From Octopus sinensis (taxonomy: Eukaryota): a DNA stretch of 43,866 bases. The notes beneath the pieces were generated by a model. The model ran no database searches and had not been told where the DNA came from. It was given only the letters and a program-made list of their open reading frames with translations. The stretch is from NCBI RefSeq assembly GCF_006345805.1, contig NW_021834933.1, positions 1 to 43,866 of the forward strand, in the 5' to 3' direction. Both the position numbers and the translations under genes were made by a program. Shown in pieces: positions 9,538 through 43,866 of this stretch (position 1 is its first letter; each line of letters starts with the position of its first letter).

Positions 9538-9749
9538 TTTGATCTAAATAACTGTAATTTTATTTGATTTAAATTAAATATGGTTATCCAATTCAAAATA
9601 AGTACAAATTAGAAATAAAACTAAATTATACATTTCTTTATCAATATCGACGAATTAGTAAATTTAAATAATTAAAAAATACAAAAAATATATAAAAGTG
9701 CAAAAATAAATAAATACATTTAAAATTTAACGAATAGACGAATAGACGT

Positions 9750-14423: not shown

Positions 14424-14745
14424 TTATTAACATTCTTTATTAAATACATATCATACAACTCCTTTCCCTCTTCTTCCTCTTCTCTGACTCGATAGATTTT
14501 TGAGAGTAAGCAGTCGAGCATCGCTAGCTGACTAAATCGCAACAGAGGACTAAATGTAAATCTTACCTTTATGCATATTAACTAATATAAAAAACTTAAA
14601 GATAATGTTTATGCATTCTTTTAGTTCAAATGTCCTTGAAAACTTAGGACTATTATCATTTTTTAACTTGTTGGTGGTAAAATTTTAAATTAACAAAAAG
14701 CACATTCATTTTCCTAATTAAACACCTAAATGAATTTTATAAAAC

Positions 14746-15495
14746 ATAATTAGTCTACACTAAGTAATTTTGTTTAAAAAACAAAAATTACGACGCAGAT
14801 TGAGTAATCATCCCCGAAACAAAAGTGTCCGCACAGGTTACATCCCATACGAAACACTTGCCCTCGCTGTATGGGAAGAACGTTATTCCGTTCGATCGCT
14901 TGCCGTCTCCGCGATCAAGACCAGTGGGCTCCAGAACCGAAGGAAAGCCTGCAGCAGCAAGGCTCAGTTTGACGACGTTGTTCAAACTGGAGTGTCTCGG
15001 TATACCTTTAGCACTTAACCTGCAGGAAAGAGGGTGGAGGCCATCAGAGTCTATCAACTGCCCACACTTGCATGGATGGGGATGGCAAAGAGGAATTCCG
15101 AGTCGAACTGACTCATCATTCAAGAGTGAACCGGCTGAAGATAGTGGGACGGCATTTAACCAGTCCCCGATGTGGTTACGCGGCTGCGTTCATTGAACCG
15201 AGTTCAATTTTATTGGCGCTTGTTTTCAGGCATTTCACGATTTCTTTACACCGGCTGGAATCCCAACTTTTTTGAGAATGATTCAGCTCGGCAATGGCAA
15301 GACCAGATGCAGTCCAAACTTTGAGGACAGAAGAAAATTCAGTCAATTCGAATTGTCCAGGAGAGAAAAAAAGAACAGATAAAAACTATTTCATGAGATG
15401 GAAATCATAATATTCCGTAAGCGCTGATAGTGATCGAGCGCTGCGAGCGATCCATCAATGTTAATGATTGTTAAAAATAAAAATAGTTTACTCAA
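14746..15495 (-). mobile_element. Internal CRE-clade fragment (zinc knuckle plus RLE N-terminal half), copy 1 of a local duplication
   Basis: The ORF reads LGIPLCHPHPCKCG...HPLSC...RHSSLN...EPTGLDRGDGKR...WDVTCADT; AT-rich flanks are shared with 15811-16577. Confidence 0.9.
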
Positions 15496-15810
15496 AATTT
15501 TTTAATTTTTTGGGGGGGAAGGTTTTAAGACTTCATCATGTAAGTCGAGGACATGTAGTTGTTCATTTTAACCAAAATGCAGAAAATTTTTTTTAATTTG
15601 TTTGGGGGGGAAGGTTTTAAGGACTTCATCATGTAAGTCGAGGACATTGTAGTTGTTCATTTTAACCAAAATGCAGAAAATTTTTTTTAATTTTTTGGGG
15701 GGGAAGGTTTTAAGGACCTCATCATGTAAGTCGAGGACATCGTATTGCCAATTTGAAGTTGGTGTGCACACACAGACAGACAGACACACACCATACCATT
15801 TTATTATTAG
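15496..15810. repeat. Three-copy ~78-bp G-tract minisatellite followed by an (ACAG)n/AC microsatellite tail
   Basis: The unit tttttgggggggaaggttttaaggacttcatcatgtaagtcgaggac...aaccaaaatgcagaaaattttttttaa occurs three times, followed by cacacacagacagacagacacacaccataccattttattattag. Confidence 0.85.
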
Positions 15811-16577
15811 ATAATTAGTCTACACTAAGTAATTTTATTTAAAAAACAAAAATTACGACGCAGACTGAGTAACCATCTCCGGACCAAAAGTGTCCGCACA
15901 GGTTACATCCCATACGAAACACTTGCCCTCGCTGTATAGGAAAAACGTAATTCCGTTCGAACGCTTACCGTCTTCGCGATCAAGACCAGTGGGCTCCAGA
16001 ACCAAAGGGAAGCCTGCGGCAGCAAGGCCTAGTTTGACGACGTTGTTCAAACTGGAGTGTCTCGGAGTACCTTTAGGACTTAACCGGCAGGAAAGAAGGT
16101 GGAGGCCATCAGAGTCTATCAACTGCCCACACATGCATGGATAGGGATGGCAAAGAGGAATTCCGAGTCAAAGACAGGTACCGAATCGAGCTGACTCATA
16201 ATCCAAGAATAAACCGGCTAAGGATAGTGGGACGGCATTTAACAAGTCCCCGATGTAATTGCGCGGGTGCGTTCATTGAAACGATTTCAATTTGATCGGC
16301 GCTTGTTTTCAGGCATTTCACGATTTCTTTACACCGGATGGAATCCCAACTTTTTTGAGAATGATCCAGCTCAGGGATGGCAAAACCAGATGCTGTCCAA
16401 ACTTCAATGACAGAAAAAAATTCAGTCAATTCGAAATGTTCAGGAGAGAGAAAAAGAACAGATAAAAACTATTTCATAAGATGAAAATCATAATATTTCG
16501 CAAGCGCTGATCGTGATCGAGCGCTGCGAGCGATCCATCAATGTTTATGAGTGTCAAAAATAAAAATAGTTTACTTA
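15811..16577 (-). mobile_element. Internal CRE-clade fragment, copy 2 of the local duplication
   Basis: Co-linear with 14746-15495 with the same breakpoints; retains a short segment (RFGTCL*LG) that copy 1 has deleted. Confidence 0.9.
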
Positions 16578-16779
16578 AAATAAAAATATTCATTCGTTAT
16601 TCATTCTTCTATAATATAGAGACTGCAATTTTAACATTTAGTAATTACATGAGTACTCATCATATTTACTAATAAATTTCAATAAAAAACATTTATTATG
16701 AATGTCGGAATTTTCTACAGCTTCTAATTCCTCCATATCAGAACTTTTTAAATTTTTTGAAATATTTAATTAAACAACA

Positions 16780-17829: not shown

Positions 17830-19280
17830 AGAAAAGTTCTGAAAATAAAAACAAGCTCGATTTGCGTGCATTGCCAGAGATCGGTTAGATCCTGACCAAG
17901 TCGATAGCTCGCGAATTTTCTGTCGCAGTCAAGAAGATTAGCATGCATCGATTTTTCTCTGATCAATAATAGAGAGCGACGTCCTTCAAAAATTTTGATG
18001 TTTGGAGACCGAAGGCTCAAGAGGTCTCGAATGCGGGTGGAAAAAGGAATATTGGTCGGCAAATTGCTTATACTTTATGGTTTTGTGGGCTTTCGCGAGA
18101 AGATGCAGCTTTTTACACTATTTGAATGGTTAATTTGCTATAAGTCTATTTGTAATTTGTATTATTCCGCGGACGGTGACATTTTATTTCTATTTTGATA
18201 AGTACTTATTAAATTTTTTTTGGAAACCTCAAGAAAAAAGTCCATGTTCGGGATTTTCGACCTCTTAGACCAGGGGTGTCAAACATGCGGCCCGCGGGCC
18301 GCATGTGGCCCTCGAAAGACATAGGTGCGGCCCTCAGCGTACTTTGCCAAACATAAGTGTGGTCTGATTTAATGGCTATAAAATGCAAAAAATTATTTTT
18401 TATTTTTTTACATTTAATTAAAATTTTTAATTGTATTTTTAAATCGTGTTTGTTAATGTCACGTGCTTCTTCTTGAATAAAAAGAAACGCTTCTTGAAAG
18501 ATGAACGGAGAGTGTTTCAAGATAAATGGGAACTTCTCTATTTTTGCACAATGGTTGATGGAAAAATACATTGTTTGATATGTAACAAGTTTATCGCTAT
18601 ACAGAAAGAACACAACCTAAAGAGGCATTATCAATCTAATCATCTATCATACAATTATTTCGAAGGTATTAAGTTGCTTATTAACCAAGAAGGTCCAATG
18701 TGTGTTTCAAAGCTAAATGGATTGCGAAAAAATTTATCTGCGTTACAAACTCATTTCACAAAAATCATTATCGAAGTACTGCATTAGTCACTGCAAGCTA
18801 TGAAATCAGTAGAATGCTTGCAGTAAATGGAAAATCATATTGTGATGGTGATTTCATTAACCAATGCCGTGTAAAAACAGCGAATATTATTTGTCCAGAC
18901 GACGTCCACTTGTTTAAAGATGAAAATGACAAAAACTGCTCAAAGAACAAGACTAACTGATGAACATTTATTCTTTTTAATAAAAGTCGGAACTACACGA
19001 ATAGCTCAGCCTGACATATCAAAAATTGTATCTAAAAAAGATGTCAATCCTCTGGAAGCAGCTCTCACCAAAATTGAAGGGCGATAATTCAATAATTTAG
19101 TTTCTCTTAATAATAATATCAGAACTAATCTTCCCTTAATGAGAAATTATTATAAATGCGGCCCTCGAAGCAAAATTGTTACAAAATGCGGCCCTCAAAG
19201 CGAAATGAGTTTGACACCCCTGTCTTAGACAATGCGCTTTAGAACACAGAAAAAATATGCGAAGGTTTCTAAAAGAGGCT
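17830..19280 (+). mobile_element. 3' end of a LINE (family ending EAGIT*), split by the hAT insertion at 18271-19222
   Basis: Joining the two flanks gives ...DFRPLRQCALEHRKNMRRFLKEAGIT*; the end gggatcacctga..tagttt matches the LINE end at about 30510. Confidence 0.6.
18271..19222 (+). mobile_element. Internally deleted Buster/SPIN hAT element (952 bp) with perfect ends
   Basis: 14-bp TIR caggggtgtcaaac at both ends; identical 8-bp TSD tcttagac (18263-18270 and 19223-19230, nnnTAnnn type). The interior encodes a SPIN-like N-terminus (FQDKW..CLIC..KEHNLKRHY; ASYEISRMLA..K.YCDGDFI). Confidence 0.95.
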
Positions 19281-20429: not shown

Positions 20430-20640
20430 CAAATGTAAAAAATGTCATAAACCAATTCTTTTACTTTTTTGCTGTAGTGACTGGTATATATAAATACCAG
20501 TTCCTTTGATAAAACAGTCCTTGGATGAATCATTCCAATCCAAATGAATCAAAATCTTCCTTGTCAAAGCCTTGAAATTGTTCGGTACCTACTTCTTGCG
20601 ATTCTTCGACCAAATGTTGAATTTGTGCATTTTCCGTCAT
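20430..20640 (-). pseudogene. CNOT2: Diverged partial copy of CNOT2 internal exons
   Basis: LVEESQEVGTEQFQGFDKEDFDS and DWNDSSKDCFIKGT align to the intact gene's LVEESQEAGTEQFQGFEKDDFDS and DWNDSSRDCFVEGT; two internal deletions. Confidence 0.85.
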
Positions 20641-21199
20641 TTTTATTATATAATAAGGGATCCCACCTGAAAACTAAATTCAGAATTTCATGAAATTGTT
20701 AAAACAAATTTCTAAAAAAATTAAAATAATCAAATTAAACAATAATTTTTTAAATTCAAAATTAATCATTCAACAATTCTTCCTGAAAACTAAACTCAAT
20801 ATTTTATGAATTTATTATTAAATTTTCTAACATAAATCAAAATTTTTAAATAAACAATGATTTTGAGGTTTCTTTGGATCAAGAATGTTGATTTTGCATC
20901 CAAAAAGATTATAACTCAAAATAAAGTGAGAAAACAAAACTCCTAAACTATTCTTGTTCACTTATTTCTGTGATATTAAAACACACACAACTATCCTGTC
21001 ATATCTATAACTGCGAAGGGAAATCACTTCATCCATATCTATAACTGCGAAGGGAAGTACAAGACTGTTTGGGGGATGACTTAGTTACGGAGACTAAGGC
21101 AGATCTCAATGGTGTCATCCACGTCCATCTCGAACATCCTTTCTTACCACTCATCACACACACTTACCTCCAGTTTCACACTTGACTTGTCACCTACCA

Positions 21200-22174: not shown

Positions 22175-23209
22175 ATGTTCGTTTCACTGTTATTAATTTT
22201 AACTGTTGTAATAAGCAAAGGTGGTAGAGTTGAGGTTATCTTATTTTTAGAATTAATATTTCTGTCAAATGGAACGCTTCTCAATGAACCAAATTGCTTG
22301 AATATAACTGGCAAGCATTTCTAATTATTTTGTAGAAATTAACGATGAATTTAAAGCTAATCGTTCGAAAACTTTGAAAATGTTTTGTGAAAAAACAAAA
22401 TATGAAATTTTGTATGAAGGTTCAAAATTTTTGGACTATTTTAAATATTAGAACTGCCAAAGGCTAAATATATAAAACTATTTAAAGAATCGGATTCGGT
22501 TTCTTTTCATCGCCAACAATATGTACAATCTTCAAAAGATATAATTAATGCTTTTGAAAATAAGAATATGAATAATTCTACAAACCTTGCCAAAGGAGAA
22601 AAATTCCTTTTAAAGCACGATAATTTTTCGTTCAGATATTGGATAAAAACAAATGAAAATAATATATTTTTTGGTATTTTAAACAAAATTTAAAATAGAT
22701 TTTGCTCATGTTTTAACGGAAGTAAAAACTTTCTACTATCATAATTATTTTTTCCATTTTTTATTAAAAACTAAAACAAATAATTTTACATCCGCCGTTC
22801 TCTGTATTATAAATTACGGACTTTGTGAGACAGTCGAAAACAGTTTTACAGATTTTAATTAATTTTTAGATTCAGTTTCAATGCAATTAAAAAATTCAAA
22901 ATTAAAAATATTATTATTAAACGTTATTTTTGTGTTACCATATGGACATCTTGAAGAATACTCTACTGTTAGTTATGTCGAGAGAAAACCTGATAATCTT
23001 ACGAACGAAAAGACAATAGAATTAAAATGTTAGTTTAATAAAGTGAATTTGTAGATTTGTATATATACGTGACATTGGCAGTTATTGTTGTGATATTTAT
23101 CGGAAATTTTAGAAAAAGTAATCGGTTATATTTTAATTTATTAGTTTATGTGAATTGGATAAAGCCGCAAAAATCAGTAGACTTGTACAAAACAATGAAC
23201 CTTAAATAG
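22175..23209 (+). CDS. Unidentified type-I membrane glycoprotein, 280 aa, 7 micro-introns (one GC-AG)
   Basis: Removing introns of 30, 25 (GC donor), 32, 25, 27, 26 and 27 nt gives an uninterrupted 843-nt frame. It encodes an N-terminal hydrophobic leader MFVSLLLILTVVIS, at least 8 N-X-S/T sequons, a TM segment YLYIYVTLAVIVVIFIGNF, then RK and a short tail ending LYKTMNLK*. Confidence 0.8.
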
Positions 23210-24238: not shown

Positions 24239-25240
24239 TTATTTTTTTAAAAATTGTTTAAATGCGGCTGAAGCTGCCTCATGAACATCACTTGGTCCCT
24301 TATCTTTCAACAAATCCGAATAGTTTATATACTCCAAAGTCTCCGAATTAATAAAAAATTCCTTTTTATACTAAACAATTTATCACTAAAATATACTTTT
24401 TTCATTTCACTAGGATTTATATAAGTAAATGTTTCTGTAAAAGACTCTGTCGGTTTATTAGCGATCAATTCCTGGGTCTTTGTGGTTGTCCCGGTTATCC
24501 AAACTTGCTGGGTTTTGTGGTATCGCCAATTCCTACGAAATCTAAACAACTTTGACAGCTCTAAACTACAATTCAATGCTTGTATTCACATGGAGTTCAT
24601 TTTGAGTGTTCAAATAAAACATAAGTGCCAAAGTTGTGTCACTGTGTCTTCCCAACTTCAACGGCGGGACCTATTTTTAACAAAAAATGTCAAAATACCA
24701 TTTCTTTAATTTTTTTGCTGTAGTAACATGGTTGGAGAATCATTTCTAACATACAAATATATAAATACCAGTTCCCTCGACAAAACAGTCCCTGGATGAA
24801 TCATTCCAATCCAAATTACTTAAATAATTAATTTTAAATACTTGTAGGGGATTGAATCGAAATCATCTTTTTCAAACCCTTGAAATTGTTCAGTTCCTGC
24901 TTCTTGAGATTCTTCGACTAATTTTTTTAAATTTGCAAATTTTTCGAATGTATTTTGACTGATCGATGGCTTATTTGGGTTAGAGCTTTTCATTTTTTCG
25001 GGCTTTGGTGTATTGGTCGTGAAAATTGGAGCTGTTGGTCATGAAATAAATAGTTTTTTACTTGTAGGAGTTCTTTCTAGTTCGTCTCGTAATTCATGGA
25101 ACCATCGGCTATTATTAGTTAATGTTTATAGTACCTTTGGTATTTTTTTCCCTTTACATTCTTGCTTTTTTGATCAGTATTCTCACTGTTCGTAGAAGGC
25201 TATTATTTTAGGCTATATAATGACCTACATGATTTGACAT
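24239..25240 (-). CDS. CNOT2: CCR4-NOT subunit NOT2/CNOT2, 262 aa, 8 micro-introns
   Basis: GT-AG introns of 29, 26, 30, 23, 23, 28, 28 and 26 nt give an open 789-nt frame. The NOT-box reads LKLGRHSDTTLALMFYLN..SIELFRRNWRYHKTQQVWIT..KKEFFINSETLE, matching CNOT2 KLGRY..L.EL..RDWRYHKEERVWIT..KEF. Confidence 0.9.
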
Positions 25241-25522
25241 CAGATAAAATATATGTTAATTAATTTTTATTTAAATTAATTTGTTAATAAATTTTTTATT
25301 TGCTTAATAATTTTCTGAATTAATTCTATTTTTCTGAAAATTTAAAAATTTCTTTTTTAATATTTTTTTATATTTGACGGATTGGGATTAGCATATAATT
25401 CTGATACTTACACGATCAGAGAAAGTTGAACAAATTTTTTACCTCATTAATTTATTTTATGTAAATATTGACGTTTTAAACTTTGATAACTTCAATTATT
25501 ATTAATAACGTGAGAATATATA
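25241..25522. promoter_or_regulatory. Bidirectional promoter copy A, CNOT2-proximal half (continues at 28100-28239)
   Basis: Lies between the CNOT2 ATG and a stub of IGHMBP2; co-linear with 31592-32288. Promoter function is inferred from position. Confidence 0.65.
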
Positions 25523-28099
25523 ATCGTGTAAATGCAATAAAAATGTCTGGCATGAAGGACCCTTGGTCGAAGAAGTTACTTGATCCGGAATCGATAAAGA
25601 AGAAACTGGAAATGACTCACACTAAGGAAAATCGTGTAAATGAAGGACAAATGTCTGGCATGAAGGCCCCTTGGTCGGGGAAGTTACTTGATCCAGAATC
25701 TGTTACGCATGCTGCTATTAGCACACAGAAGAGAACTCATCTAATTGACCACATATCCCCAAAGAAATACGATATTAGTGTTCAAACTGACGACATTGTC
25801 AGAAACGGATCGAATCCGGAACTCAGACCTGCTTCATTAACACGGGAATTTAAACGGACCCATGCCCAGAAACAAAACCCGCCGCCTCGAAGACGAGAGC
25901 AGTGAAGAAAACTGCGGTAGCAAATTCTGGAGTTCAGCTGCCAAGTCCCGAAGCCCGGCTGGAGGACGATGGGACGCCTCTAGAGCCGGCTGAAATGGGT
26001 AGCAAACGGAAAGCAGGCAGACCCCCTTTACCGAAAAAGATGGCGCTCCCACGGGAGGTCAGCCACCCATGTCGGAAGAATGCCTCGTTATGACAATTCT
26101 AAATGCCCGCTCACTCACGAGACGGGTAACGGAGCTGAGGTTTCTGCTAGCCTCAGCGAAAACGGACGTACTGATTGTCAACGAGACAAAGCTGAAGGGA
26201 CCAAATAAAATTGAATTTGAAGGCTAAAAATCCCTTAATATCCCATGGAAAACTGACGCAGTAGCAGGAACCTCTGTCTTCTATAATGAAAGTATGAGAG
26301 TCAAAAACCGGTGACCTGAACGCAAAGAATGTTGTCTATAGGTGTGAAGCAACCAATACGGACGGAGAGGTACTTGAGAGTTTGTCTCAAAATCTCGGTT
26401 TTTCGATATGGACGTCCGAAGAGCTAAACCACTATCCGGATAGAGGCAGACCGGATCGCCTTGGAATTTTTCTCTCCTCGGCGTCTATTACTCCACTCTG
26501 TGATCGTCCGACAATCGAGGTAAATGTAGGAAGTGATCACATCCCGCAATCATTGAGACTAAGGACGAAAATAAATCTGACAGAAGACGTGTTTATTGGA
26601 TATAATCTGTCAATGTGGGCATCTATTTAAGTACTCTATGCGCTTGGCACTTAATACTACCGTGCTCCGTCCTCTTCGGACCATGGAGGATATCGACGAC
26701 CTATCTGAGGTCATCAATTGTCGAATTTTTGGAAAAATTTACGGAAGAGAGATTATTGAGAGCATCGGGCACTTGTTTCCGCCAAACAAACAAAAAACTG
26801 TCGATGCTTATAACGAAGAAAGGCACCCTTCAGAATCGCACGAGGAGGTGTTCCAACATGGGAGTCAGAAATCAGTTAAAAGTTTAAATCGACCACCTCA
26901 AGACGATGATACTTAAAATTGGGAAAAAGAAAATAGAAAAATCATGGAGGAAGGAATGCTGAATGCAGGATAAGAGAAATCCAAAGTTTTGGAAGGCGTA
27001 TCAGCGCCTGAACAACGCGGAAGGGAAAGGCGACAACATTGTGTTAAAGGGGCAAGATGGAAAGTATATCCCTTCCGATTTTGTCCCGGATGAACTAAGA
27101 AGGCAGCTGGGTAGAACCCAAGAAGTCGAACCTGAATCAATTATTCCACAAAAGACCTTTGAGAAAGTCACTTCAAGGCTAGAATCTCTAAATCTTGTGA
27201 GTGGACCTCTATGCAAGACTATTACCGAAAAAAAGACACAAGAAGTGATAGCAGGGCTGAAAAACAAGGCCCTTGGATTCGACTACATACCTGTGTTACT
27301 TCTTAAGAAGGCTCCGAGGATCCTCCTACGGGCTCTAACTATGCTTTTCGACGCTAGTTTTATCCTTGGTTATCTTCCGCCCACCTGGAAGTGCACAGTC
27401 GTTCGTATGATCCCGAAACCTGGGAAAACAAGTCTCCTAGCAGAAAACTACAGCCCTATAAGCCTGATCTGCGCTTTTTCGAAAATTATGGAGAAAATAA
27501 TTTTGAAGACTCTCATTACATGTTGAAAAGAATAATCTGGTTTCCGTTGTACAATGGGGTTTTCGTCCTGGGAAATCCACGGGAAACTGCTTGAAGGTTC
27601 TAGAAAGGGGACTTTCTTGGGCAATACGTAATAAATCTTGCACGACTGCTGTGTGCTTGGATTTGTCGAAGGCTTTTGACTGCGTCTGGCACCTGTGCAG
27701 GCTGTCGAAGCGGAGGAGCGAAAATGCTCGTGTCTTTGGAGTTGGGGACTTGAAACTTTCGCAGAACCTCCAATACCTTGGGGTTACAATAGATGCCAGA
27801 GGATCCTATGGAAATCATATCGATACCCAAAGGAAGAGAGCCGTTAAAATCCTACGAAGCCTGACCAGATTTCATCTCAAAGAAAAATTGGATAACTCAT
27901 ATGAATCCTGCGTCCATAAAATACAGTCCGTCCTGGAGAAGGCGCGGTTGCTTTTTTAGTGGACATCAGATATCAGGGAAATATGCTGCTAAGTAGAGAC
28001 ACTCCGGTGCCTCATTCTTTTTTAAAATTTCCCGTCGTCGATAATGGCTAGTTTTTTCCTGTCTTCCTAACTAGTAAAATAAATAAATTGTATTGTACT
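25523..28099 (+). mobile_element. Decayed Jockey-like LINE (ORF1 end, APE endonuclease, RT) inserted in promoter copy A
   Basis: APE motifs TILNARSL..VNETKL and GSDHIP; RT motifs WKCTVVRMIPKPGK..YSPISL and CLDLSKAFDCVWH; LQYLGVTID; A-rich 3' end. gaatatata on both sides (25514-25522, 28100-28108) is a candidate TSD. Confidence 0.88.
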
Positions 28100-28239
28100 G
28101 AATATATACGTAAGAGTATGTTTGTTGCTTTTTAAACGTATATCTCTTTTAAAATTAAATTAATTTGTGATTAGTATTTTTATATTTTCTAGTATATTAA
28201 TATTTAATTTCTTAGAAGTAATTATTTTAGATTAAATTA

Positions 28240-28299
28240 ATGGAGGAAATTACAATTGAAAAGTTTGTCGAGACACAAATAAAACTTGTACAGTTCGAG
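28240..28299 (+). pseudogene. IGHMBP2: 20-codon 5' stub of IGHMBP2
   Basis: MEEITIEKFVETQIKLVQFE is identical in protein to 32289-32348; the similarity then stops abruptly. Confidence 0.9.
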
Positions 28300-28337
28300 G
28301 AATTGATAAAAATACTTCTCTAGATGCTAATGATTAA

Positions 28338-28470
28338 CCAGTCTCCTGAGTGTGGTTGCTTGGTTGTGTTCATTGAGACGAATTCAATTTAATCGGTGCT
28401 TGTTTTCAGGGATTTCACGATTTCTTTACACAGAATAGAATCAAAATATTTTTAAAATGATCCAGCTAGG
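28338..28470 (-). mobile_element. Internal CRE fragment related to about 15160-15290
   Basis: Direct nucleotide similarity (gcttgttttcagg.atttcacgatttctttacac); truncated by the hAT end at 28472. Confidence 0.75.
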
Positions 28471-28471
28471 G

Positions 28472-28950
28472 CAGGGGTCGGCAAATAATTTTGGAGAAAA
28501 GCCAAAAGAACATTTGGAGAAGAACATTTTTGGAAATTTCAAAAAATTGAAGAGCCACCTTTAACCACTTGTCAAAAATTTAAATTCATAAAATTAAATA
28601 GACATTAATTTAAAAATAATTAAGAATTCATTTAAAAAAATTAATTAATTAGACACATTAATGAGAAATGTGATTCTTTATTTCTTTGGAGAGTTGGTTA
28701 ATGTCTGGGTCGTAAGTCGTTAATTTTAATCTGAGGTTAGATTTCAAATTCGAATCTGTAATTTTGTTCCTTAATTTTGATTTTATATAATTCATATGAG
28801 AAAAACTTTGTTCACAAATATAAGTAAACCTGAATATTGTCAAAATTCCGTATGCAATTTTTTTAATTCATAATAAGAATCTGAAAGAGAATTCCAAGTT
28901 ACGAAAATCACATCTTTTCGAATCATATAATAATTTTTCGTTTAATTGTA
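28472..28950 (-). mobile_element. 3' end of a Buster/SPIN hAT element
   Basis: Terminus caggggtcggcaaa at 28472; the ORF reads TYICEQSFSHMNYIKSKLRNKITDSNLKSNLRL..ISH* (hAT dimerisation domain). Confidence 0.85.
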
Positions 28951-28959
28951 GTAAATTAT

Positions 28960-29290
28960 CGTTATTCTTGAATCACTTCAGAATTTGAGCATCTATTCAA
29001 ATACGTTTCATTCTTGGCTTTACCACGGACTACCAAGTTTTTCCATACTGAAAAAAAATTTTCAATAGGATTTTAAAATGAACAGTATGGTGGCAAAAAT
29101 TTCCTGATTATAGTTGATACTTCAGTATCATTTTCCAGTTAACGGTAGTGATGAATCCTCGCATTATCCATAATAAAAATAGGATTAGTAATATCTTTCG
29201 ATAAACATAATGCTTTTATTTTTAGTAAAACGGTTTTGAAATCTTCTCCGTTAACTGCCTTATCATGAATTTTATGGAATAACATCTCAT
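28960..29290 (-). mobile_element. Tc1/IS630-like DDE transposase remnant
   Basis: Reads IFIMDNARIHH..FLPPYCSF*NPIENFFSVWKN. Confidence 0.85.
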
Positions 29291-29304
29291 ATTTATTCCA
29301 AATT

Positions 29305-29372
29305 TAAAAATTATTATATTGATTCGACAAATTATTATATTGGTTCGAAAAATTATTATATTGATCCGAAAA
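29305..29372. repeat. Three-copy ~22-bp tandem repeat
   Basis: aaattattatattg(a/g)t(t/c)cga occurs three times. Confidence 0.8.
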
Positions 29373-30499
29373 CCCTATAAAATCCATGTCAGACAACAGG
29401 TTGGGTTCCCGGAAACAGGACACGAAAATTGGTACAATCTTGGAAATTTTTTTATTGTTGAAACTATAAAAATATCTAGTTCATATTAATTCTATAATAA
29501 AGACGCCGGCAAAAGAATTGACTTATAATTTCTTCAAAAAATCGTTTCCTGATTCTGTCTCTTTTTGGTCACCTCAATGCTTGTTCTTTTCTTATTTTTT
29601 AAAAATATTTTTTAAAAACGGATTGTTCATTTTTATGAGATGAAAATTGTTCTTTCAAATGAGGGTTCGAGACTTTTACAAATTTCCCAAACTTGTTATT
29701 TATATATTTGATTATTTTTTTATAAATAACTTTGATTATATTATAATAAAATATCTGGTAAACCTAATGTAATTAGATAACCACGTTGCAACTTACAATG
29801 CTTTTGTTGTGGATTCAACAAATTTTGTTCTATTTGTTTGTTGTTGTGCTTTATCACTTTTATTTATCACTTTTTATTCTTGTATATTAATGGTTAATAT
29901 ATGTATTAAAATCGATTAAATATATTGTTGACTTACAGAATTTCTTATAGTATTCGATATTCTGTAATATAATTGGTTTCATTTTGACAATAATTTAATC
30001 TTTTTTATCTTTGCCATTCAATACTTTCTGGATTTTTTTCCAAAACCATAATTTTTTTCTTATTTTCATGTTTATTAAGATTTTAATTGGTAGTTGGTCT
30101 TTTCGTAAATTCATTTTAATCATTTTGAACGTACAATAACTCAACTAGTAATAATAATTTTCAAAAATCTCAATTATTTATTCCCATTTTGTTGTATTTT
30201 TGGGAAAAAATCTGGAATCTTTCATTTGGACTTGTTGCCGTTACATAGTAATTTAATCAGATCAATAAATTTTTCAATTGATAGTTTTTGGCAATATTTC
30301 GGGTAGAGTTTTTTTAAAGCAGCACTTTTTATTTCAATAATGAGTCCTTTTCTGACCTCCATTGAACAATTATGTAAAATATTGGCAACGCAATTGACAT
30401 GGAAAAGATTAGGATATAGATTTTTAAAACTTTCCGAAAGTACAAAACACAGCTTTTCGAATGTGTTATATTATTATTAGAACCAAGATCACCGTCCAA

Positions 30500-31190
30500 A
30501 ACATAAAACTAATTAATCAGGTGATCCCGGCTTCTCTGAGGAGGGTCCTCAACTTTGCCCGTTGCTCCTCCCTTGTCCCGGCACAATTTCTGTGAGGACG
30601 CGGTGGTGTTTTAGGCCCTGTAGCCCCGAGGTTTCTTCCCAAGATTTCATTAAATGGGGCGATGAGTAGATGTAGTGCTTTTCGGAAGCGTTCTTGAGTT
30701 TTCTCGATTTTAACGCGGTTCGTTCCACTGATAAACCCTCCCCACGCCTCACAAGCACAACTAAGGGAGGGTTCGATGAATTGCCGGTATATTGATTGGC
30801 GTGCGGGGAAGCTGATCCATTGTTTGTGTTTTCGGAGAAACACTTTCAAGATGTTCAGTTTCTTCATGCAGCTGGTAGTAATATTATCAACTTGTTGAGA
30901 GAAACACATATGACTATCGTAAGTCACGCCGAGGATTTTCTGGGATTTTTAAACGGGATTTCCATGTTATTGAGATACAGGTTCACCACCATTTTCCCAA
31001 GCTTCCTTGCTGGAGTCATAAGCGTGGTGACCGATTTTTCAGGACTCGTTGATAGTCGATTTAACGAGAGCCAACTTTCGAGATTGTTATCATCCGAATG
31101 TGTTATATCGACTTTTTTTATCATCCGAAGGCATCAATTTGGATAAACTTTTTGTGATTGTCTAATTAAATCTTTCAACTATGCCCTGAC
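30500..31190 (-). mobile_element. 3' portion of a LINE (Jockey/I-like; ends EAGIT*)
   Basis: Reads SPEKSVT..LGMTYDSHMCF..KKLNILK..IYRQFIEPSLSCACEAWG..LREAGIT*. Confidence 0.8.
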
Positions 31191-31369
31191 TCTGGGGATT
31201 GTTGGGTCGTCCATGAATTTGAACAATTTTGTACTTTTGACAGAGTTTTCTTATATAGTCATTCTTAATTAGACATCAAAGTATTAATAAAAGTTATTTT
31301 AAGTTTCGTTGGAAAATGTGTTCATAATCACGTTAGCGAACAAAGGTTATATTATTTTTGTGCAACTAA

Positions 31370-31500
31370 TTATCGGCAGAGGACAAGATGGAATGGCAAT
31401 TCCACGCAAGATGGCTATTGATATGCGTTGGAAAAGCCATGTCCGTTCTCGATGATCGTTTTTCCTTCTGCTTGCCAGATTCCCCAATTAATCTCATTCT
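31370..31500 (-). mobile_element. CRE-clade 3' end fragment
   Basis: The reverse strand reads LGNLASRRKNDHRERTWLFQRISIAILRG. Confidence 0.75.
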
Positions 31501-31559
31501 TCAATCTGTAATAGATAAAGATATCTGGCTTATTGAACTGAACTTGCGTATGTAGAATT

Positions 31560-32288
31560 ATGGCTAATAAATGACTCACAAGATTAGACATCAAATAAAA
31601 TATATGTTAATTAATTTTTTTGTCTTTTTTTGTTAATTAATTGTTTTTTTTTTTAATTAATTATTATTTAAAATAATTTGTTAATAAATTTTTTATTTGT
31701 TTAATAATTTTCTGAATTAATTCTATTTTTCTGAAAATTTAAAAATTCCCTTTTTAATATTTTTTATTTTTTTATTTGAAAAAATTTGTTTAAGATAACA
31801 AGTAAAATAGAGAAGTTAACTAATTTAGATGAGTCGCCGAGCGGATGGACAGGCAATTTCCACGTAATATCGCGAACGATATCCGCTGAAAAAGCCAGCT
31901 CGTTTCACGACTGTCGTGACTCCTCCTCGAGATGATTAAACCGATCTCTGAGAGAAAAAAAATATTTTTTATATTTGGCGTATTGGTATTAGCATATAAT
32001 TCTGATATTTACACGATCAGAGAAAGTTGAATAAATTTTTGACCTCGTTAATTTATTTTATGTAAATATTGACGTTTTAAACTTTGATAATTTTCATTAT
32101 TGTTAATAACGTGAAATATTCACATATATAGAAGCATTTTATGTATAATGAATTTATACGTAAGAGTATGTTTGTTGCTTTTTAAACGTTTATCTCTCTT
32201 AAAATTAAATTAATTTTTGCTTAGTTTTTTATATTTTCTAGTATATTAATATTTAATTTCTTAGAAGTAATTATTTTAGATAAAATTA
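31560..32288. promoter_or_regulatory. Bidirectional promoter copy B, with a CNOT2 5' stub (ATG at 31591, minus strand)
   Basis: Co-linear with about 25210-25522 plus 28100-28239; retains the CNOT2 ATG, exon 1 and first intron donor; lies directly upstream of full-length IGHMBP2. Confidence 0.7.
31768..31960 (-). mobile_element. 193-bp CRE 3'-end insertion with a 12-bp TSD
   Basis: Encodes EIGLIISRRSHDSRETSWLFQRISFAILRGNCLSIRSAT; aatattttttat at 31756-31767 and 31961-31972; the paralogous site at about 25359-25371 has a single motif and no insert. Confidence 0.9.
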
Positions 32289-34795
32289 ATGGAGGAGATT
32301 ACAATTGAAAAGTTTGTCGAGACACAAATAAAACTTGTACAGTTCGAGAAAATAGCAGCATTAAAGTTGAAAAGCAAAAATAAGACTAACATTTAGACGG
32401 GATAACATTTCTAATGTCAAAGAACAGTGCATTGAGAATGTGTACTTCTTAAACAAAACTAGAGCTATTACCGATCGAATAATACTTCAATTTTCGACAA
32501 AAAAGTCTTACCGAAAATTTGTGATATTAATTTAAAAAAGGGTTGATTTTGACAATTAAAACAGGCGATATATTTCATGTATTTTTATCAACTGAGGCCA
32601 AAAATGTTAAAATTGCAGAAACAGTATTTTGGGGTATTGGAAAATCTAATTCATTTTTTTGGGCCTATTGGATCTATTTTTGCATGAAAAAATCTGCGTC
32701 AAAACAACCATATAAACTAATCAGAATTCCAAATATAAAGTTTATGAGCTAATGGAAAAGTTTCACATTAAAGTAATAAATTAGCGCTTTGAAAGAATTA
32801 CTTGAATCATCTTGTATATTCGCAAAAATGTTTTTTCCAACTCCAAAGGAAGAAACACAAATAAACCCAAAATCCACGATTAATTCAAAACTTCATTTTT
32901 TAATAAAAATTTAAATATTGGTCAAAAAGAGGCTGTGGACTGTGTGATCTCTCAGTCCAATCTTAATATAATCCAAGGCCCACCGGGGACCGGAAAGTCA
33001 AGTGTAATACTTGAAATAATTCAACAATCACTAAAAGACAAAAATAGCCGAGTTTTTTTAGTTTTTGATTATATTTTAGATTCTCGTAACTGCACCTTCT
33101 AATATTGCTGTAGACAATCTAGTTGGGGGCTTCAGTGCCCTTAAAATGCCCGAAAGATCATTTGTTAGGATTGGAAATGAAGCAAAAATGTTGAAAGTCG
33201 GACTTATAAATTCTGATGCTTCCCGACTAAAAGAAAGTGACTGTTATCCTGAATTAAAAAAAATTGAAACTTTATTGAATAAACCTCAAGTTCTCTTATA
33301 TTAAAAAATATAGCAGATCATCAAAGATCAGAAAAGGACTGATCAATTACTAAAAAACTACATGGAAATCAAAAATAGAGAAATTACAAAAATTGTCCTT
33401 TCTTCTCATGTAGTCTTTACTACATTGGCAGGAGTGGGAAGGTTAAAAAAGATTATTTTCAGAAAAAACGAAAAGCCTACATATAAATTTGATTTGTTCA
33501 TAATCGACGAGTGCAGCCAAGTTGTTTTATTTCAAACAAGTAGGCATTGGAAGCAATATGTTGGTTGGGACTTCCTTTGACAAACAAATGTGTAATGGCT
33601 GGAGATTGTAATCAATTGCCGCCAACAGTGCTTTCCCTAGAGTAATAATAAATATATTTTTGTAGAGCAGAAATGGAGGGTTTTGGAGTTTCCATAATGG
33701 AAAGAGTGGCTAAACTATATCCCGAGTGTGTAAAGATGTTGACTATTCAGTACAGAATGCATTTAAAAATAATGTCATTTCCTTCTACCGAATTCTACGA
33801 CGATAAACTAATTCCAGACATATCTGTTAAATCTCATCTTCTTACGTATAAAAAGACATTTTTTGAGTTTTCAGTGACCTTAAAAAGGTCCAACGTACTC
33901 TGCTCACCTCAGCTGCCCTCGTTGTGATTGACACTGCCGATTTTTCATTTTATGAGGAAAAAATAAATCGTGCATCAAAATTTAATCCTGGTTTTTATTT
34001 TTAAAATATTTTTACAGGCGAGGTTGATATTGTGGTAGAATCTGTTCACAGACTGCTCAAAGCAGGGGTTAAACAGAAAGATATAGGGGTTATCTCTTTC
34101 TACTCTGGACAAGTTGGAGAAATTGTCAAAAATTTGTCAAAATTCAAAAAACTCGAAGTAAACAGCGTCGATTCCTTCCAAGGACGGGAAAAGGAAGCCA
34201 TAATTCTTTCATTTGTCAGGTCCAATACTCGTGGTTATATATATAATATATTTTCTAGATTTAGTTGGTTTTTTGTCAGATTTTAGAAGAATTAATGTGG
34301 CACTAACCAGAGCACGACGACTTTTGATTCTTGTTATAGACACCAATACATTTTCCCGCCAACATTGTTACAAAATGGTTATACCAAAATTTGCTGACGT
34401 TCGACTAAGTCCATTAGATTTTTTTGAAATGGGTTATTTTGTAATATTTATAAAAAGAATTCGATCCTTGTTCACCTTGGTCAGTCTATTCAACACTCCA
34501 CGAAGAAATTCGTTTGTTGGCCATCTCTGTGGCCTGTAAAAGAGGAGAATACATATTTGATGTATATCCGTCCAGACATGACAGATTAGTAATCTCCAAT
34601 GTTTCAAATTATGTTAAATTCCAATAGATTGTTAAAGAGTTTGGATATCTTACACTTATAGATGAAACTATTGGGTTTGATAAACCTACGCTCAAAATAA
34701 TTACAAAGTCAGAATTTAAAATTACAAATAATGATTCAAAACATGACGAAAATTGCGAGGAACTTGGCCAAAGCTTATTAACATTAAGTTTTTGA
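32289..34795 (+). CDS. IGHMBP2: IGHMBP2/SMUBP-2 (Hcs1-like) SF1 helicase with a degenerate R3H-like domain; about 12 micro-introns; three 1-nt frameshifts in the N-terminal third
   Basis: N-terminus IEKFVETQIKLVQFE; helicase motifs IIQGPPGTGKS, APSNIAVDNL, IIDECSQ, AGDCNQLPPTV, LTIQYRMH, VDSFQGREKE and RRINVALTRARR; tail RHDRLVISNIVKEFG. Introns are 20-31 nt; about 733 aa if three bases are restored. Confidence 0.9.
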
Positions 34796-37435: not shown

Positions 37436-38299
37436 ATGCATCCTTGCACGTTTAAATCATGTGACAAGTCATTTACTCGTCCATACAAATTAGAAGCACA
37501 CATTCGAACACATTTAGACGAAGTAATCACTAATTATAACAAATATTAATAGAGACCATATATCTGCAACATTGACTGGTGTAACAAAGCATATACACGC
37601 AACAAATTTATTAAGACATCAATCCATCAGTCATCCCACCAAACCACAAGAAACAACAAAATTAAAGTTTATTAGCATTTTTAAAATTTAAAGTTGTCCA
37701 TTCGAGGATTGTAATGCCACTTTTGTGTCTAAACAAACCTTATCTCGACACAAAAATAGATTTCATTCAAATTTGAGCTTGAAATGTAATTTTAATCAAT
37801 GTGATGCCACATTTTCAAATAAAAGACAACTTTTTTGTCACACCAGGAAACATGTGAGGGATAATATTTATCAGAAACAATTTTGTGTCCACAAACGTCA
37901 ACATAAACAGAATGGTATATTTAAATACTATTTGCATTTTAAATTTCAAATTTAATTTTAATATATTAAATTAATAATATTTTTAACAGAATTTATTTGT
38001 GGTCATTGTGGTACGTCTTTTCCATCAAAACGATCATTACACTCACACAATCAAAATATGTCTTTATTGTGCAATACGAATAAAAAACTAAACGTTTTTA
38101 CTTGCGAATTTCCCCTCTGCTTAAAAAAATACACAACAAAGTCCAATCTTCAAAGCCATATAAATAGAGTACATAAAGGGGTCACTTTTCCTTGTAAATT
38201 TGGAGATGGGTGCTCTTTGACTTTTTCTTCTAAAGTAGAATTCATTCTACTAATTGATAGCAAAAAATGAATGAACATTATAAAAATGTACATAAATAA
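37436..38299 (+). CDS. GTF3A: TFIIIA-like multi-C2H2 zinc-finger protein; 4 introns (30, 27, 75, 26 nt); one frameshift
   Basis: Finger 1 CTFKSCDKSFTRPYKLEAHIRTH, linker ERPYIC, and a late finger CLKKYTTKSNLQSHINRVH resembling TFIIIA YTT..NLQSH; about 8 fingers. The frame breaks in finger 2 near 37601-37607. Orthology is from memory only. Confidence 0.65.
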
Positions 38300-42107: not shown

Positions 42108-43230
42108 ATCATTTTTGTGATATTTTTCGATTTATTTCTTTAATCTCCTTTTTTTTCTGCTTATTTATACTTTTTGTGATATTTTTCGAGTGTTGTGCCT
42201 TTAATATCCTTTTTTCTTATTTCTATTTATTTTTTGTGATATTTTTCGATTTTATTCCTTTAATCTCTTTTTTTACTTATTTATACTTTTTGTGATATTT
42301 TTTGAGTTTGTTCCTTTAATCTCTTTTTTTACTTTTCTATTTATATTTTTTGTGATATTTTTCGATTTTATTCCTTTAATCTCCTTTTTTTACTTATTTA
42401 TACTTTTTGTGATATTTTTTGAGTTTGTTCCTTTAATCTCCTGGAATGGAATGGAAATGGAATGGAAGTTTTATTGTAAGCAAATCAGAGACTTAGTGAA
42501 AAGGTTGGACGAGGTTAAACGAGACGACTGCAAGGACAGTCGAGCTCTACCGAGATTCGTCCTAAGAGAGTATACGAGCCGGCCTTTGATTAGAGTCACT
42601 CTCTGATTGAGTTTCGGACCACGATCCACAAAAAAGATCGGACACCTGAGACCTCCGACGAAAGATTCGGATGGAATCGAGGATGACATTCTTGATTAGT
42701 GGAAATTTCCCCTCTGCCCAGCTGGGTAGGCGGCGCGCGTAGATCCAATCTGTACGCTAGCTTTAACGCATAGCGTCGGATCTTCTCATACTTTTTTAAA
42801 ATTTTTTCGAATTGGTTTGAATAGTGCCACGCCTCCATCCCATACAGAGACTTGGGAGAATCGTCGCGCGAAGACAAACAGAAAAGTGTCAGGGGCCAAA
42901 TGCATACCCCTCAGGAAGCGAAGGGCCGCAACGGCCTTTTTCCTTTTCTGAGTGACGTGCAGTAAGTACTCCGAGTTAGCGTCTACCGTCAAGCTCCTTT
43001 TTTACTTTTTTCTATTTATATTTTTTGTGATATTTTTCGATTTTATTCCTTTAATCTCTTTTTTTACTATTTATACTTTTTGTGATATTTTTTGAGTTTG
43101 TTCCTTATTCTCCTTTTTTACTTTTTTCACAAAAAGTCCTTTTTTTACTTATTTATACTTTTTGTGATATTTTTCGATTTATTTCTTTTAATCTCCTTTT
43201 TTACTTATTTATACTTTTGTGATATTTGAA
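42108..43230. repeat. AT-rich ~58-62-bp minisatellite with two mostly alternating variants, interrupted by a LINE fragment
   Basis: Units tttttgtgatatttttcgattttattcctttaatctc..tacttatttatac and tttttgtgatattttttgagtttgttcctttaatctc..tacttttctatttata occur on both sides of 42443-42993. Confidence 0.9.
42443..42993 (-). mobile_element. 5'-truncated LINE 3' end with a (TTCCA)n tail
   Basis: Reads LLHVTQKRKKAVAALRFL and YGMEAWHYS..KIRRYALKLAYRL; the tail reads tggaatggaatggaaatggaatggaa on the plus strand; ctcct on both sides is a candidate 5-bp TSD. Confidence 0.8.
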
Positions 43231-43866
43231 TCTTATATGTCACGGTCGGCTCGTGATTTGAAAAACTTTAGGAACGTTATCAATGAATTGCACATGATTT
43301 CTAAATGGTACAGTTATCCGAGAATCTCCACTTAAGATCACACCTCCAATATATCTTATAGCAAGGATTGTATAGCAAGAATCTCCTTTTTTACTTATTT
43401 ATACTTTTGTAATATTTGAATCTTATATTATATGTCGCCAAATCAGCGATGTATCTGTCACGAGGTCTCTTAGCGATTATAGGAATTATTTAAGGCTTTG
43501 TCGCCATCAATTTCTTTGACTGACAAATATAGATCAAAAAAAAATACCTGACAAAATGAACATTTTGACACAATCTGAGCAACTTCGGATCGGGTAACAT
43601 CGTAATAACGATTACGAAGTTTGTCGAATAGACGATTTCGTCCAAAGTGATTTATATTATGTTCTTTTCTTAGTCTGTATCTTTTTTTCTTGTCGACATC
43701 TTTAAAAGATGTTGGATCGCGATCAGAATTAATATAAACTTCAATTTGTTCTATTTCTTGCAAAAAAAGCTTCACTAAAACCATGCGGCAATTTGAAATA
43801 ATTCAAATCTTTATAATTTGAATGAAACTGTTATTTACACTACAAGTTAACAAAGCCATCTATTCG
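43230..43866 (-). mobile_element. Ginger/KRBA2-like integrase remnant with a 28-nt intron; runs off the window end
   Basis: H2C2 zinc-binding domain HNINHFGRNRLFDKL..YDVTRSEVAQIVSKCSFCQ, a GT-AG intron, then SKKLMATKP*IIPIIAKRPRDRYIADL. Confidence 0.75.

Follow-up and report, generated by a model that had tools for sequence, protein, structure and literature searches.

A probable small tandem duplication of the intergenic block between head-to-head CNOT2-like and IGHMBP2-like genes, followed by mobile-element filling

In the duplication-degeneration-complementation (DDC) model, which was reportedly put forward by Force et al. in 1999, whole genes are duplicated and their subfunctions are lost by later complementary mutations. 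The locus in our study is similar to this model, as a putative regulatory region was duplicated and each copy is now tied to one of two ancestral outputs. However, the putative promoter was duplicated between two different genes here, and the partition was instant, being made by the breakpoints. The locus may also be likened to partial or tandem gene duplications leaving truncated 5′ stubs. Divergent gene pairs with a bidirectional promoter of less than 1 kb have been surveyed, for example in PMC2670823 and PMC3403606. Like these pairs, the reconstructed ancestor of the locus was made up of unrelated genes that lay on opposite strands and had their ATGs about 450–490 bp apart, whereas the present pair is 7 kb apart through duplication of the intergenic block itself. 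In addition, linked gene pairs which were separated by rearrangements in yeast, with their regulation persisting, have been analyzed via expression data (PMC3156566). As in those pairs, once-adjacent genes were separated here and each retained its proximal upstream DNA; unlike the yeast pairs, they were separated by local duplication and mobile-element filling. The literature search returned no report of a gene pair that was split when its bidirectional promoter was duplicated.

Ultra-short introns in animals were described in myxobolid myxozoans and Dicyema japonicum, and Henneguya salminicola possesses a GC content of 29.1% and a median intron of 27 bp (PMC13644364). The window (the whole stretch of 43,866 nucleotides that was analyzed) resembled myxobolid myxozoans and D. 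japonicum, with introns of 19–30 nt, only GTa...AG signals and about 30% GC. Exact look-ups of window ORFs in sequence collections gave no record, a metagenome scan returned 0 matches to a 44-mer taken from the block, and the database search with the CNOT2-like protein gave no match. Concatenated unspliced ORFs, one of which spanned the junction of the spacer and copy B, gave only one weak match. The protein search with the helicase core gave no match above 48% identity, and its two best "close" matches came from a gene in a bacterial MAG and from an isolated Logan contig of 2 kb.

The window was compared with itself, and a block of about 0.5 kb was present twice in direct orientation with 6% mismatches. 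The original prediction that one ancestral intergenic block was duplicated and occurs twice in the window was borne out almost to the base by the self-comparison and the alignments, and the 5′ ends of the two genes are arranged alike in each copy. The genes, the two copies and their parts are as follows.

24239–25240, minus strand: CNOT2-like gene, 9 exons, 262 aa, 8 introns of 23–30 nt (GTA...AG); ATG at 25240, exon 1 at 25229–25240, intron 1 at 25200–25228
25211–25519 and 28082–28302: copy A, adjoining the intact CNOT2-like gene, interrupted at 25520–28081
25211–25519: CNOT2-proximal part of copy A, starting in CNOT2 intron 1, with exon 1 and 279 bp upstream of the CNOT2 ATG
28082–28302: IGHMBP2-proximal part of copy A, with 169 bp upstream and the first 20 IGHMBP2 codons
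28251–28334, plus strand: IGHMBP2 exon-1 stub ORF of copy A, MEEITIEKFVETQIKLVQFE, followed by 7 unrelated codons before the stop
31562–31767 and 31961–32351: copy B, adjoining the IGHMBP2-like gene, interrupted at 31768–31960
31562–31767: CNOT2-facing part of copy B, with the CNOT2 exon-1 stub, its donor and a 46-bp AT-rich expansion
31580–31591, minus strand: CNOT2 exon-1 stub of copy B, ATG TCT AAT CTT, with the donor GTGAGT at 31574–31579
31961–32351: IGHMBP2-proximal part of copy B, with the first 20 codons and, before the ATG, 328 bp of upstream sequence
32289–34795, plus strand: IGHMBP2 (SMUBP-2)-like SF1 helicase gene, ATG at 32289, stop at 34793–34795

The block consisted of four collinear direct matches between copy A and copy B, and no further occurrence of these matches was found in the rest of the window.

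25211–25268 and 31562–31619: match 1, 86%
25256–25368 and 31653–31765: match 2, 95.6%
25359–25519 and 31961–32119: match 3, 91.9%
28087–28302 and 32136–32351: match 4, 94%, E=1.5e-89

The base-level alignment of copy A with copy B gave 31 mismatches in 510 aligned bases (6.1%), and the expansion, at about 31619–31664, was extra in copy B relative to copy A. The divergence was uneven along the block, with 14% at its CNOT2 end compared with 2.3% at its IGHMBP2 end, and gene conversion is one possible source of this. The homology stopped abruptly at 25211/31562. Within the block, no inverted-repeat symmetry was found beyond low-complexity AT-rich matches. A mobile element as the identity of the block itself was ruled out because it contains the first exons of two genes and occurs only twice.

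In both copies, the initial 12 coding bases and the splice donor of the minus-strand CNOT2-like gene were present, together with the first 20 codons of the plus-strand IGHMBP2-like helicase. This shared arrangement of the two 5′ gene ends can have come only from a single-copy head-to-head ancestor. The reconstructed gap from ATG to ATG was 448 bp (plus 16 bp lost) for copy A without its LINE and 492 bp for copy B without its retroposon. The reconstructed ancestor was a divergent pair, with the genes on opposite strands and their starts less than 1 kb apart, and the present distance between CNOT2 and IGHMBP2 is 7,049 bp from ATG to ATG.

The CNOT2-like protein matched Pfam NOT2_3_5_C with E=6e-12 and 46.2 bits (cut-off 27) over profile positions 19–125 of 126, and this C-terminal NOT box was the sole Pfam domain found. 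Against the PDB, the E values for human CNOT2 and yeast Not2 were 1.6e-11 and 9.4e-8, respectively, and no CNOT3/Not5 chain was found at E≤1. The NOT box was of the CNOT2 type rather than the CNOT3/Not5 type, and the Not3 N-terminal domain was absent. The 5′ extension to the ATG at 25240, obtained as a chain from ATG through the exons, was non-random, being equalled by 0 of 300 shuffles. The gene is intact, with 8 canonical short introns. The real exon 1 and donor read ATG TCA AAT CAT and GTAGGT (25240–25223, minus strand), and the stub at which copy B was expected to begin aligned with them over the 12 coding bases and the donor. Similarly, the gene model and the alignment agreed that copy A adjoins intact CNOT2 and carries a 20-codon IGHMBP2 stub, as had been proposed; the stub (ATG 28251) had 20 codons in common with the real exon 1 (ATG 32289) and then diverged.

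The IGHMBP2-like protein matched Pfam AAA_11 (E=2.7e-45) and AAA_12 (E=2.2e-56), and the helicase motifs GPPGTGKS, DECSQ, QGREKE and TRAR were visible in the gene model. Against the PDB, SMUBP-2 (4b3g/4b3f) matched over the whole query with E=1e-44, while the other families (UPF1, SEN1/SETX, DNA2 and AQR) had E values of 3.7e-27 or worse, and the top-scoring database proteins carried the names IGHMBP2/HCS1. An R3H-like segment was seen by eye at the C-terminus (YPSRHDRLVISNIVKEFGYL) and had no Pfam match at E≤0.1. The tblastn exon map and the gene model gave an intact core from 32884 to about 34400 with all helicase motifs and introns of 19–29 nt. The claim that copy B adjoins full-length IGHMBP2 was correct for the adjacency but not for "full-length", as the assembled gene had no uninterrupted frame from ATG to stop and one 1-bp break was unavoidable.

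32881–32913, plus strand: IGHMBP2 frame break, where the frame linked to the ATG overlaps the frame of the helicase core and no GT/GC-AG intron joins them

One extra base anywhere in these 33 nt, which hold A4, T6 and A5 runs, would restore ...SKLHFFNKNLNIGQKEAV..., and FFNKNLNIGQKEAV in this region was matched by the homologue profile. The break may be either a homopolymer error or a recent lesion. Furthermore, a second junction (32521–32596) could be bridged only by an intron of 76 nt, which is unusually long, or by deleting 1 bp. No clean 5′ model was obtained by dynamic-programming splicing, which found paths only by removing conserved residues, and the profile of the homologues' N-termini was too weak to discriminate the 5′ variants.

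Each copy is interrupted by a different mobile element.

25520–28081, plus strand: degenerate non-LTR retrotransposon (LINE-like), 2.56 kb, splitting copy A, with remnants of endonuclease and reverse transcriptase (RT)
31768–31960, plus strand: 193-bp non-coding retroposon (SINE-like or a truncated LINE tail) with a 3′ A-run

The LINE of copy A had a GC content of 0.44, compared with about 0.30 in its flanks, and its many frameshifts and internally truncated RT indicated a dead element. Single ORF fragments gave no Pfam match, and the domains were seen only after stitching across the frameshifts. The stitched translation matched RVT_1 with E=1.2e-10 and 41.9 bits (cut-off 29.6), over profile positions 1–88 of 205 only, and Exo_endo_phos_2 with E=1.6e-5 and 25.2 bits, just below the cut-off of 27.4. 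In the junction alignments, no target-site duplication (TSD) was found at its flanks. About 16 bp of its target were missing from copy A and were present in copy B at 32120–32135, and the unoccupied site was intact in copy B at about 32119–32136. The distance of the element from the CNOT2 ATG is 279 bp, and the ATG of the IGHMBP2 stub is 169 bp away. The origin of the duplication by 3′-transduction of the LINE was ruled out, as copy B holds both halves without the LINE.

The 193-bp element, which was named "CRE" in the original prediction, had no coding capacity. It was flanked by a perfect 12-bp TSD (AATATTTTTTAT) at 31756–31767 and 31961–31972, and copy A keeps the uninterrupted site at about 25358–25370. 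With related copies at 4553–4742 and 31387–31469 (partial), the family had three copies in the window. No Pol III-type head (tRNA-, 5S- or 7SL-derived) was found for it, as there was no tRNA and no Rfam family anywhere in the window. The distance of this element from the IGHMBP2 ATG is 328 bp, and the ATG of the CNOT2 stub is 176 bp away. The placement of a LINE of about 2.6 kb in the IGHMBP2-facing part of copy A agreed with its length, its RVT_1 match and its greater closeness to the stub ATG; that of a 193-bp insert on the CNOT2-facing side of copy B agreed with the exact length, the TSD and the position nearer the CNOT2-stub ATG. Each copy holds the empty site of the other, so both pre-insertion sites were retained in the window, as had been stated. 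Each element is absent from the other copy, so both insertions were later than the duplication. Like non-LTR and SINE-type insertions dated by empty sites, the 193-bp element possessed a perfect 12-bp TSD and an A-tail, with the paralogous copy as the empty site. Compared with such insertions, the LINE was a degenerate endonuclease and RT element with a target-site microdeletion and without a TSD.

The two copies are separated by a spacer of mobile-element fragments.

28303–31561: spacer, 3.26 kb of nested mobile-element debris
28334–28470: repeat, also at 15156–15291 and 16239–16376
28661–28867, minus strand: hAT-like C-terminus, weak profile match
28965–29303, minus strand: Tc1/mariner-like DDE_3 fragment, Pfam DDE_3 E=5.9e-6
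30225–30470 and 31165–31275, minus strand: integrase-like fragment, weak rve match, split by a 5′-truncated LINE
30472–31094, minus strand: this 5′-truncated LINE, with the 14-bp TSD CGAATGTGTTATAT at 30458–30471 and 31095–31108
31387–31469: partial copy of the 193-bp element family

The locus probably represents a genuine small tandem duplication of a head-to-head intergenic block that was then filled by mobile elements. In this proposal, the CNOT2-like gene (minus strand) and the IGHMBP2-like gene (plus strand) would have stood head-to-head at the start, with about 450–490 bp between the ATGs. A single event would have copied the whole intergenic block, breaking within intron 1 of CNOT2 and at codon 21 of IGHMBP2, and would have given the order CNOT2 ← copy A ... 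copy B → IGHMBP2. Each copy has a live gene on the outside, whereas on the inside it ends in a dead stub, which is 4 codons long for CNOT2 and 20 codons long for IGHMBP2. The junction between the copies, with no function to lose, would have gathered the 3.26 kb of nested mobile-element fragments, and afterwards the LINE would have inserted in copy A and the 193-bp retroposon in copy B. Each gene now has a private copy of the once-shared upstream DNA; the uninterrupted upstream sequence is at least 279 bp for CNOT2 and at least 328 bp for IGHMBP2. The duplication and its limits, the stubs, the succession of the events and the nature of the elements are shown by the sequence. Judging from its position, the block is presumably a promoter. 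The inner halves of the copies may be free of constraint, and the duplication was probably near neutral and did not divide regulation in an adaptive way.

Regulatory subfunctionalisation, in which the two directions of a shared promoter were split by complementary loss and the retroelements marked or caused the loss of the unused direction, was doubtful. Both insertions were later than the duplication, and both elements were closer to the stub than to the live gene (169 versus 279 bp, and 176 versus 328 bp), and the part of the original prediction that placed them toward the stub side stood. However, there are two insertions only, which would both land on the stub side by chance with a probability of about 0.25, and the claim based on their placement was not supported as stated. 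Likewise, CNOT2 lies beside copy A and IGHMBP2 beside copy B, but each gene kept one copy because the breakpoints lie in CNOT2 intron 1 and IGHMBP2 codon 21, and not through complementary decay: one gene was truncated per copy, the partition was already complete at duplication, and no degenerative step was required. Moreover, the mismatch density gave no faster decay of the unused halves, in one pairwise comparison which has no outgroup and is not assignable to lineage; the unused IGHMBP2-proximal end of copy A was the best-conserved part in a post-hoc comparison (2.3% versus 6.1% overall). Subfunctionalisation was thus unsupported as stated, given the imposed partition, the two insertions and the lack of asymmetric decay. 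It is also possible, but unlikely, that a bidirectional promoter was dissected naturally at this locus, with about 280–330 bp of private upstream DNA for each gene and the inner halves as disposable landing pads for retroelements. If this were true, the two promoter directions would be modules that can be separated from each other, in an animal lineage whose introns are close to the minimum.

The original duplication could have been larger, covering for example the whole CNOT2 gene and the block, with the extra gene lost by deletion and mobile-element replacement and only its first exon left. An older partial CNOT2-like relic 3.6 kb away (20450–20673, minus strand, aa 74–138, 60–75% identity) shows earlier duplication and decay of the gene here, and the spacer, being entirely mobile-element debris, could have overwritten a gene copy. 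However, tblastn with the CNOT2-like protein found nothing in 28303–31561 even at E<1, and the homology ends sharply at 25211/31562, which makes a larger event improbable; it would change the size of the event, while the outcome would be the same. It is quite improbable that IGHMBP2 was recently disabled, in which case copy B would serve a decaying gene and the uncoupling would not have left two working genes. This would explain why an added base is needed to connect the frame of the ATG with that of the helicase core and why the junction at 32521–32596 is irregular, but the 1.5-kb core and C-terminus kept every helicase motif with clean short introns and no stops or frameshifts, and the A4/T6/A5 homopolymers around the break are a typical site of long-read consensus errors. 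If the break is real, the rearrangement may have harmed IGHMBP2. The same 1-bp break hints at residual consensus errors, and the intron lengths and GC content are like those of genomes assembled from noisy long reads (PMC13644364), as would suit a false duplication from two haplotypes or mis-joined reads. Such an assembly artefact is very improbable, since the 6.1% divergence, the private mobile element of each copy and the window without Ns argue against a collapsed repeat or a scaffolding error. In addition, the junctions of the spacer with the two copies are unique, which is impossible from two allelic haplotypes of a single-copy locus, and the entire 7-kb structure is short enough for single long reads.

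Compared with these alternatives, the tandem duplication followed by mobile-element filling remained the preferred explanation, and the locus is a real, neat and ordinary tandem micro-duplication, that is, a structural rearrangement. It opens no new mechanism, and its worth for promoter biology hinges wholly on transcript data. Provided that the structure is real and that both genes are expressed, the locus would be a compact, teaching-grade example in which the genes of a divergent pair are physically uncoupled by a small tandem duplication and the paralogous copies serve as mutual empty-site controls for dating insertions. Under the same condition, non-functional junction DNA would act as a mobile-element sink in an otherwise compact gene landscape.

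Comparison of the window with itself found the predicted intergenic block twice, at 25.2-28.3 kb (copy A, adjoining the CNOT2-like gene) and 31.6-32.4 kb (copy B, adjoining the IGHMBP2-like gene), as four collinear direct matches. Together with base-level alignments, the result was in agreement with the originally predicted coordinates to within a few bases. No further copy of the block was detected elsewhere in the 43.9-kb window, which contained 0 Ns.

Matches between copy A and copy B in the self-comparison
25211-25268 / 31562-31619, direct, match 1, 86% identity
25256-25368 / 31653-31765, direct, match 2, 95.6% identity
25359-25519 / 31961-32119, direct, match 3, 91.9% identity
28087-28302 / 32136-32351, direct, match 4, 94% identity, E=1.5e-89

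The copies differed by 31 mismatches over 510 aligned positions (6.1%), and a 46-bp AT-rich expansion was private to copy B. The divergence was uneven, with 14.3% at the CNOT2 end (25211-25266) against 2.3% in the IGHMBP2-proximal 131 bp (28171-28302), a stretch comprising the 80 bp directly before the IGHMBP2 ATG and the 20-codon stub, the truncated gene start. The best-conserved part of the block was the IGHMBP2-proximal end of copy A, the unused one. The overall test of heterogeneity along the block gave p=0.087, and the end-to-end contrasts were post hoc. Gene conversion between the copies might account for the low values at the IGHMBP2 end and the high values at the CNOT2 end, and chance is another possibility.

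Genes, stubs and relic around the block
24239-25240, minus strand, CNOT2-like gene, 262 aa, 9 exons
25229-25240, minus strand, exon 1 of the CNOT2-like gene, ATGTCAAATCAT
20450-20673, minus strand, older, partial CNOT2-like relic, matches the live gene over aa 74-138 (60-75% aa identity)
ATG 28251 to stop 28334, plus strand, IGHMBP2 stub in copy A, 20 common codons, then LIKILL-stop
31591-31574, minus strand, CNOT2 stub in copy B, ATG TCT AAT CTT, then donor GTGAGT
32289-34795, plus strand, IGHMBP2-like SF1 helicase gene

The CNOT2-like protein possessed a NOT2_3_5_C domain (Pfam E=6e-12), and its only matches among solved structures were CNOT2/Not2 chains, with none to CNOT3/Not5. All eight introns of the gene model were 23-30 nt long and of the GTA...AG type. 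Exon 1 was credible because the chain of three short introns from ATG 25240 to exon 4 was equalled in 0 of 300 shuffles. The relic, about 66% identical in nucleotides to 24682-24946, had neither the NOT box nor the upstream block, and points to an earlier CNOT2-like gene duplication whose product decayed.

The helicase core matched human SMUBP-2/IGHMBP2 with E=1e-44, whereas UPF1, SEN1 and DNA2 were far weaker (E of at least 3.7e-27). In addition, AAA_11 and AAA_12 domains were present, and the database matches of the protein carried the names IGHMBP2/HCS1. The gene had been predicted to be full-length; from 32884 to about 34400, over core and C-terminus, it was indeed intact, with introns of 19-29 nt, but the ATG-linked frame could not be joined to the core frame. 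An ATG-linked exon chain was possible in the 5' 600 bp with introns of 31, 76 and 45 nt, and no GT/GC-AG intron could connect it to the frame of FFNKNLNIGQKEAV...GPPGTGKS. One base added anywhere in 32881-32913 (A4, T6 and A5 runs) gave a reading that fits the family profile. The break must reflect a consensus error in a homopolymer or else a lesion of very recent date, and the error is favoured because the other ~1.9 kb of coding sequence is in perfect state.

The left boundary of the block (25211/31562) lay inside CNOT2 intron 1 and the right boundary (28302/32351) directly after IGHMBP2 codon 20. Copy A therefore held the real CNOT2 exon 1 with the IGHMBP2 stub at its opposite end, and copy B the real IGHMBP2 exon 1 opposite the CNOT2 stub. 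Both 5' ends are present in both copies in the same arrangement, so before the duplication the locus must have had the two genes head to head, about 450-490 bp from ATG to ATG; the predicted ancestry could thus be addressed from the window alone. The present distance is 7,049 bp.

Inserts in the two copies
25520-28081, LINE (non-LTR retrotransposon) in copy A, GC-richer than its surroundings
31768-31960, element of exactly 193 bp in copy B, with a 3' A-run

The frameshift-stitched translation of the LINE matched RVT_1 (E=1.2e-10, covering only the first 88 of 205 profile positions) and a LINE-type endonuclease family (E=1.6e-5, a score just under the cut-off). The element had many frame changes and internal deletions, no target-site duplication was found at its junctions, and it replaced about 16 bp kept in copy B. 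In its 5' part, a 71-nt segment was doubled (25522-25592 / 25630-25700, 108 bp apart, 89%), repeating the peptide MSGMK.PWS.KLLDPES inside the first ORF. The insertion site lay between the arms of a weak inverted repeat (34 nt, 71%) with AAACGTTT/ACGTTTTAAA in each arm. This repeat was whole in copy B (32048-32081 / 32180-32213), and in copy A the LINE separated its arms (25447-25480 / 28131-28164); its significance within AT-rich DNA is doubtful.

Perfect 12-bp copies of AATATTTTTTAT flanked the 193-bp element, whose empty site was present in copy A. The element showed no coding capacity and no tRNA or Rfam match, and relatives occurred at 4553-4742 and 31387-31469; it is a short retroposon, a putative CRE in the original prediction. 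Both inserts are younger than the duplication because each is absent from the other copy. The LINE was 169 bp from the stub ATG and 279 bp from that of the live gene, and the 193-bp element 176 bp and 328 bp, respectively. The structural part of the original prediction was borne out, namely a duplicated shared block, one copy per gene, and preserved pre-insertion sites.

Spacer between the copies
28303-31561, spacer, 3.26 kb of nested mobile-element debris
28334-28470, repeat with two more copies at 15-16 kb
within the spacer, hAT-like C-terminus
within the spacer, Tc1/mariner-like DDE fragment, DDE_3 E=5.9e-6
30225-30470 and 31165-31275, integrase-like fragment, interrupted by a 5'-truncated LINE
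30472-31094, minus strand, this 5'-truncated LINE, perfect 14-bp TSD CGAATGTGTTATAT (within 30458-31108)

The most likely history is a single ~0.5-kb duplication that broke within CNOT2 intron 1 and at IGHMBP2 codon 21; it would have produced the order CNOT2 <- A / B -> IGHMBP2. Mobile elements would then have collected at the functionless A/B junction, with the LINE and the 193-bp element arriving at a later stage. The original duplication may also have been larger, with the extra gene copy lost later; the older relic at 20450-20673 provides a nearby precedent for such decay, and no CNOT2 or IGHMBP2 homology was found in the spacer (28303-31561). An assembly artefact is an unlikely source of the duplication, given the 6% divergence between the copies, the insertion private to each, and the unique junctions of the spacer with both A and B.

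The window was about 30% GC and rich in mobile elements, and its confidently placed introns (24239-25240, 32884-34600) were all 19-30 nt with minimal GTa...AG signals only. Among animals, this combination is on record only from myxobolid myxozoans and Dicyema japonicum (PMC13644364). Henneguya salminicola, for instance, is reported to have 29.1% GC and a median intron of 27 bp, in a PacBio assembly with Racon polishing (PMC13644364). Neither the window's own ORFs and proteins nor any close relative turned up in the sequence collections searched.

Coding remnants elsewhere in the window
7977-8186, minus strand, alcohol-dehydrogenase N-terminal domain exon, ADH_N E=5.8e-7
18443-18784, plus strand, BED-type zinc finger, E=2.6e-4
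37692-38267, plus strand, multi-C2H2 zinc-finger gene, E=2.2e-9
43473-43802, minus strand, integrase H2C2 zinc-binding domain, E=3.9e-6

At 9738-11408 (plus strand), where the window reaches its highest GC content (0.48), lay a second, better preserved RT-bearing element, of which a stitched piece matched RVT_1 (E=1.6e-6); it had no nucleotide similarity to the copy-A LINE. Two segments of about 780 bp (14734-15498 / 15798-16581), in direct orientation and 89% identical, were accompanied by smaller tandem units at 15498-15744 and included the repeat found in the spacer at 28334-28470. Furthermore, 13385-14129 and 22248-22982 (about 750 bp each, direct) were 66.6% identical (E=9e-42). The tandem-repeat block at 42112-43428 (repeat units roughly 55-120 bp long and 80-98% identical) read as a long Phe/Leu/Ile-rich plus-strand ORF and is probably a minisatellite, not a gene.

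In the duplication-degeneration-complementation model, partition comes from complementary degenerative mutations following duplication. At this locus, by contrast, it was immediate, set by breakpoints leaving a mere stub on each inner side. The original prediction was right that the block was duplicated with one copy per gene, but its regulatory subfunctionalisation goes beyond the evidence, because the breakpoints themselves impose the partition at once, there are only two insertions, whose placement has a probability of about 0.25 by chance, and the 31 substitutions, without an outgroup, are not attributable to used versus unused halves. The stub-side placement of both elements fits relaxed constraint on the inner halves (n=2, chance about 0.25). 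The locus adds a further case of processes already known and does not represent a novel type of system; it is a real and unusually legible case in which a small tandem duplication splits a divergent gene pair and mobile elements then pile up.
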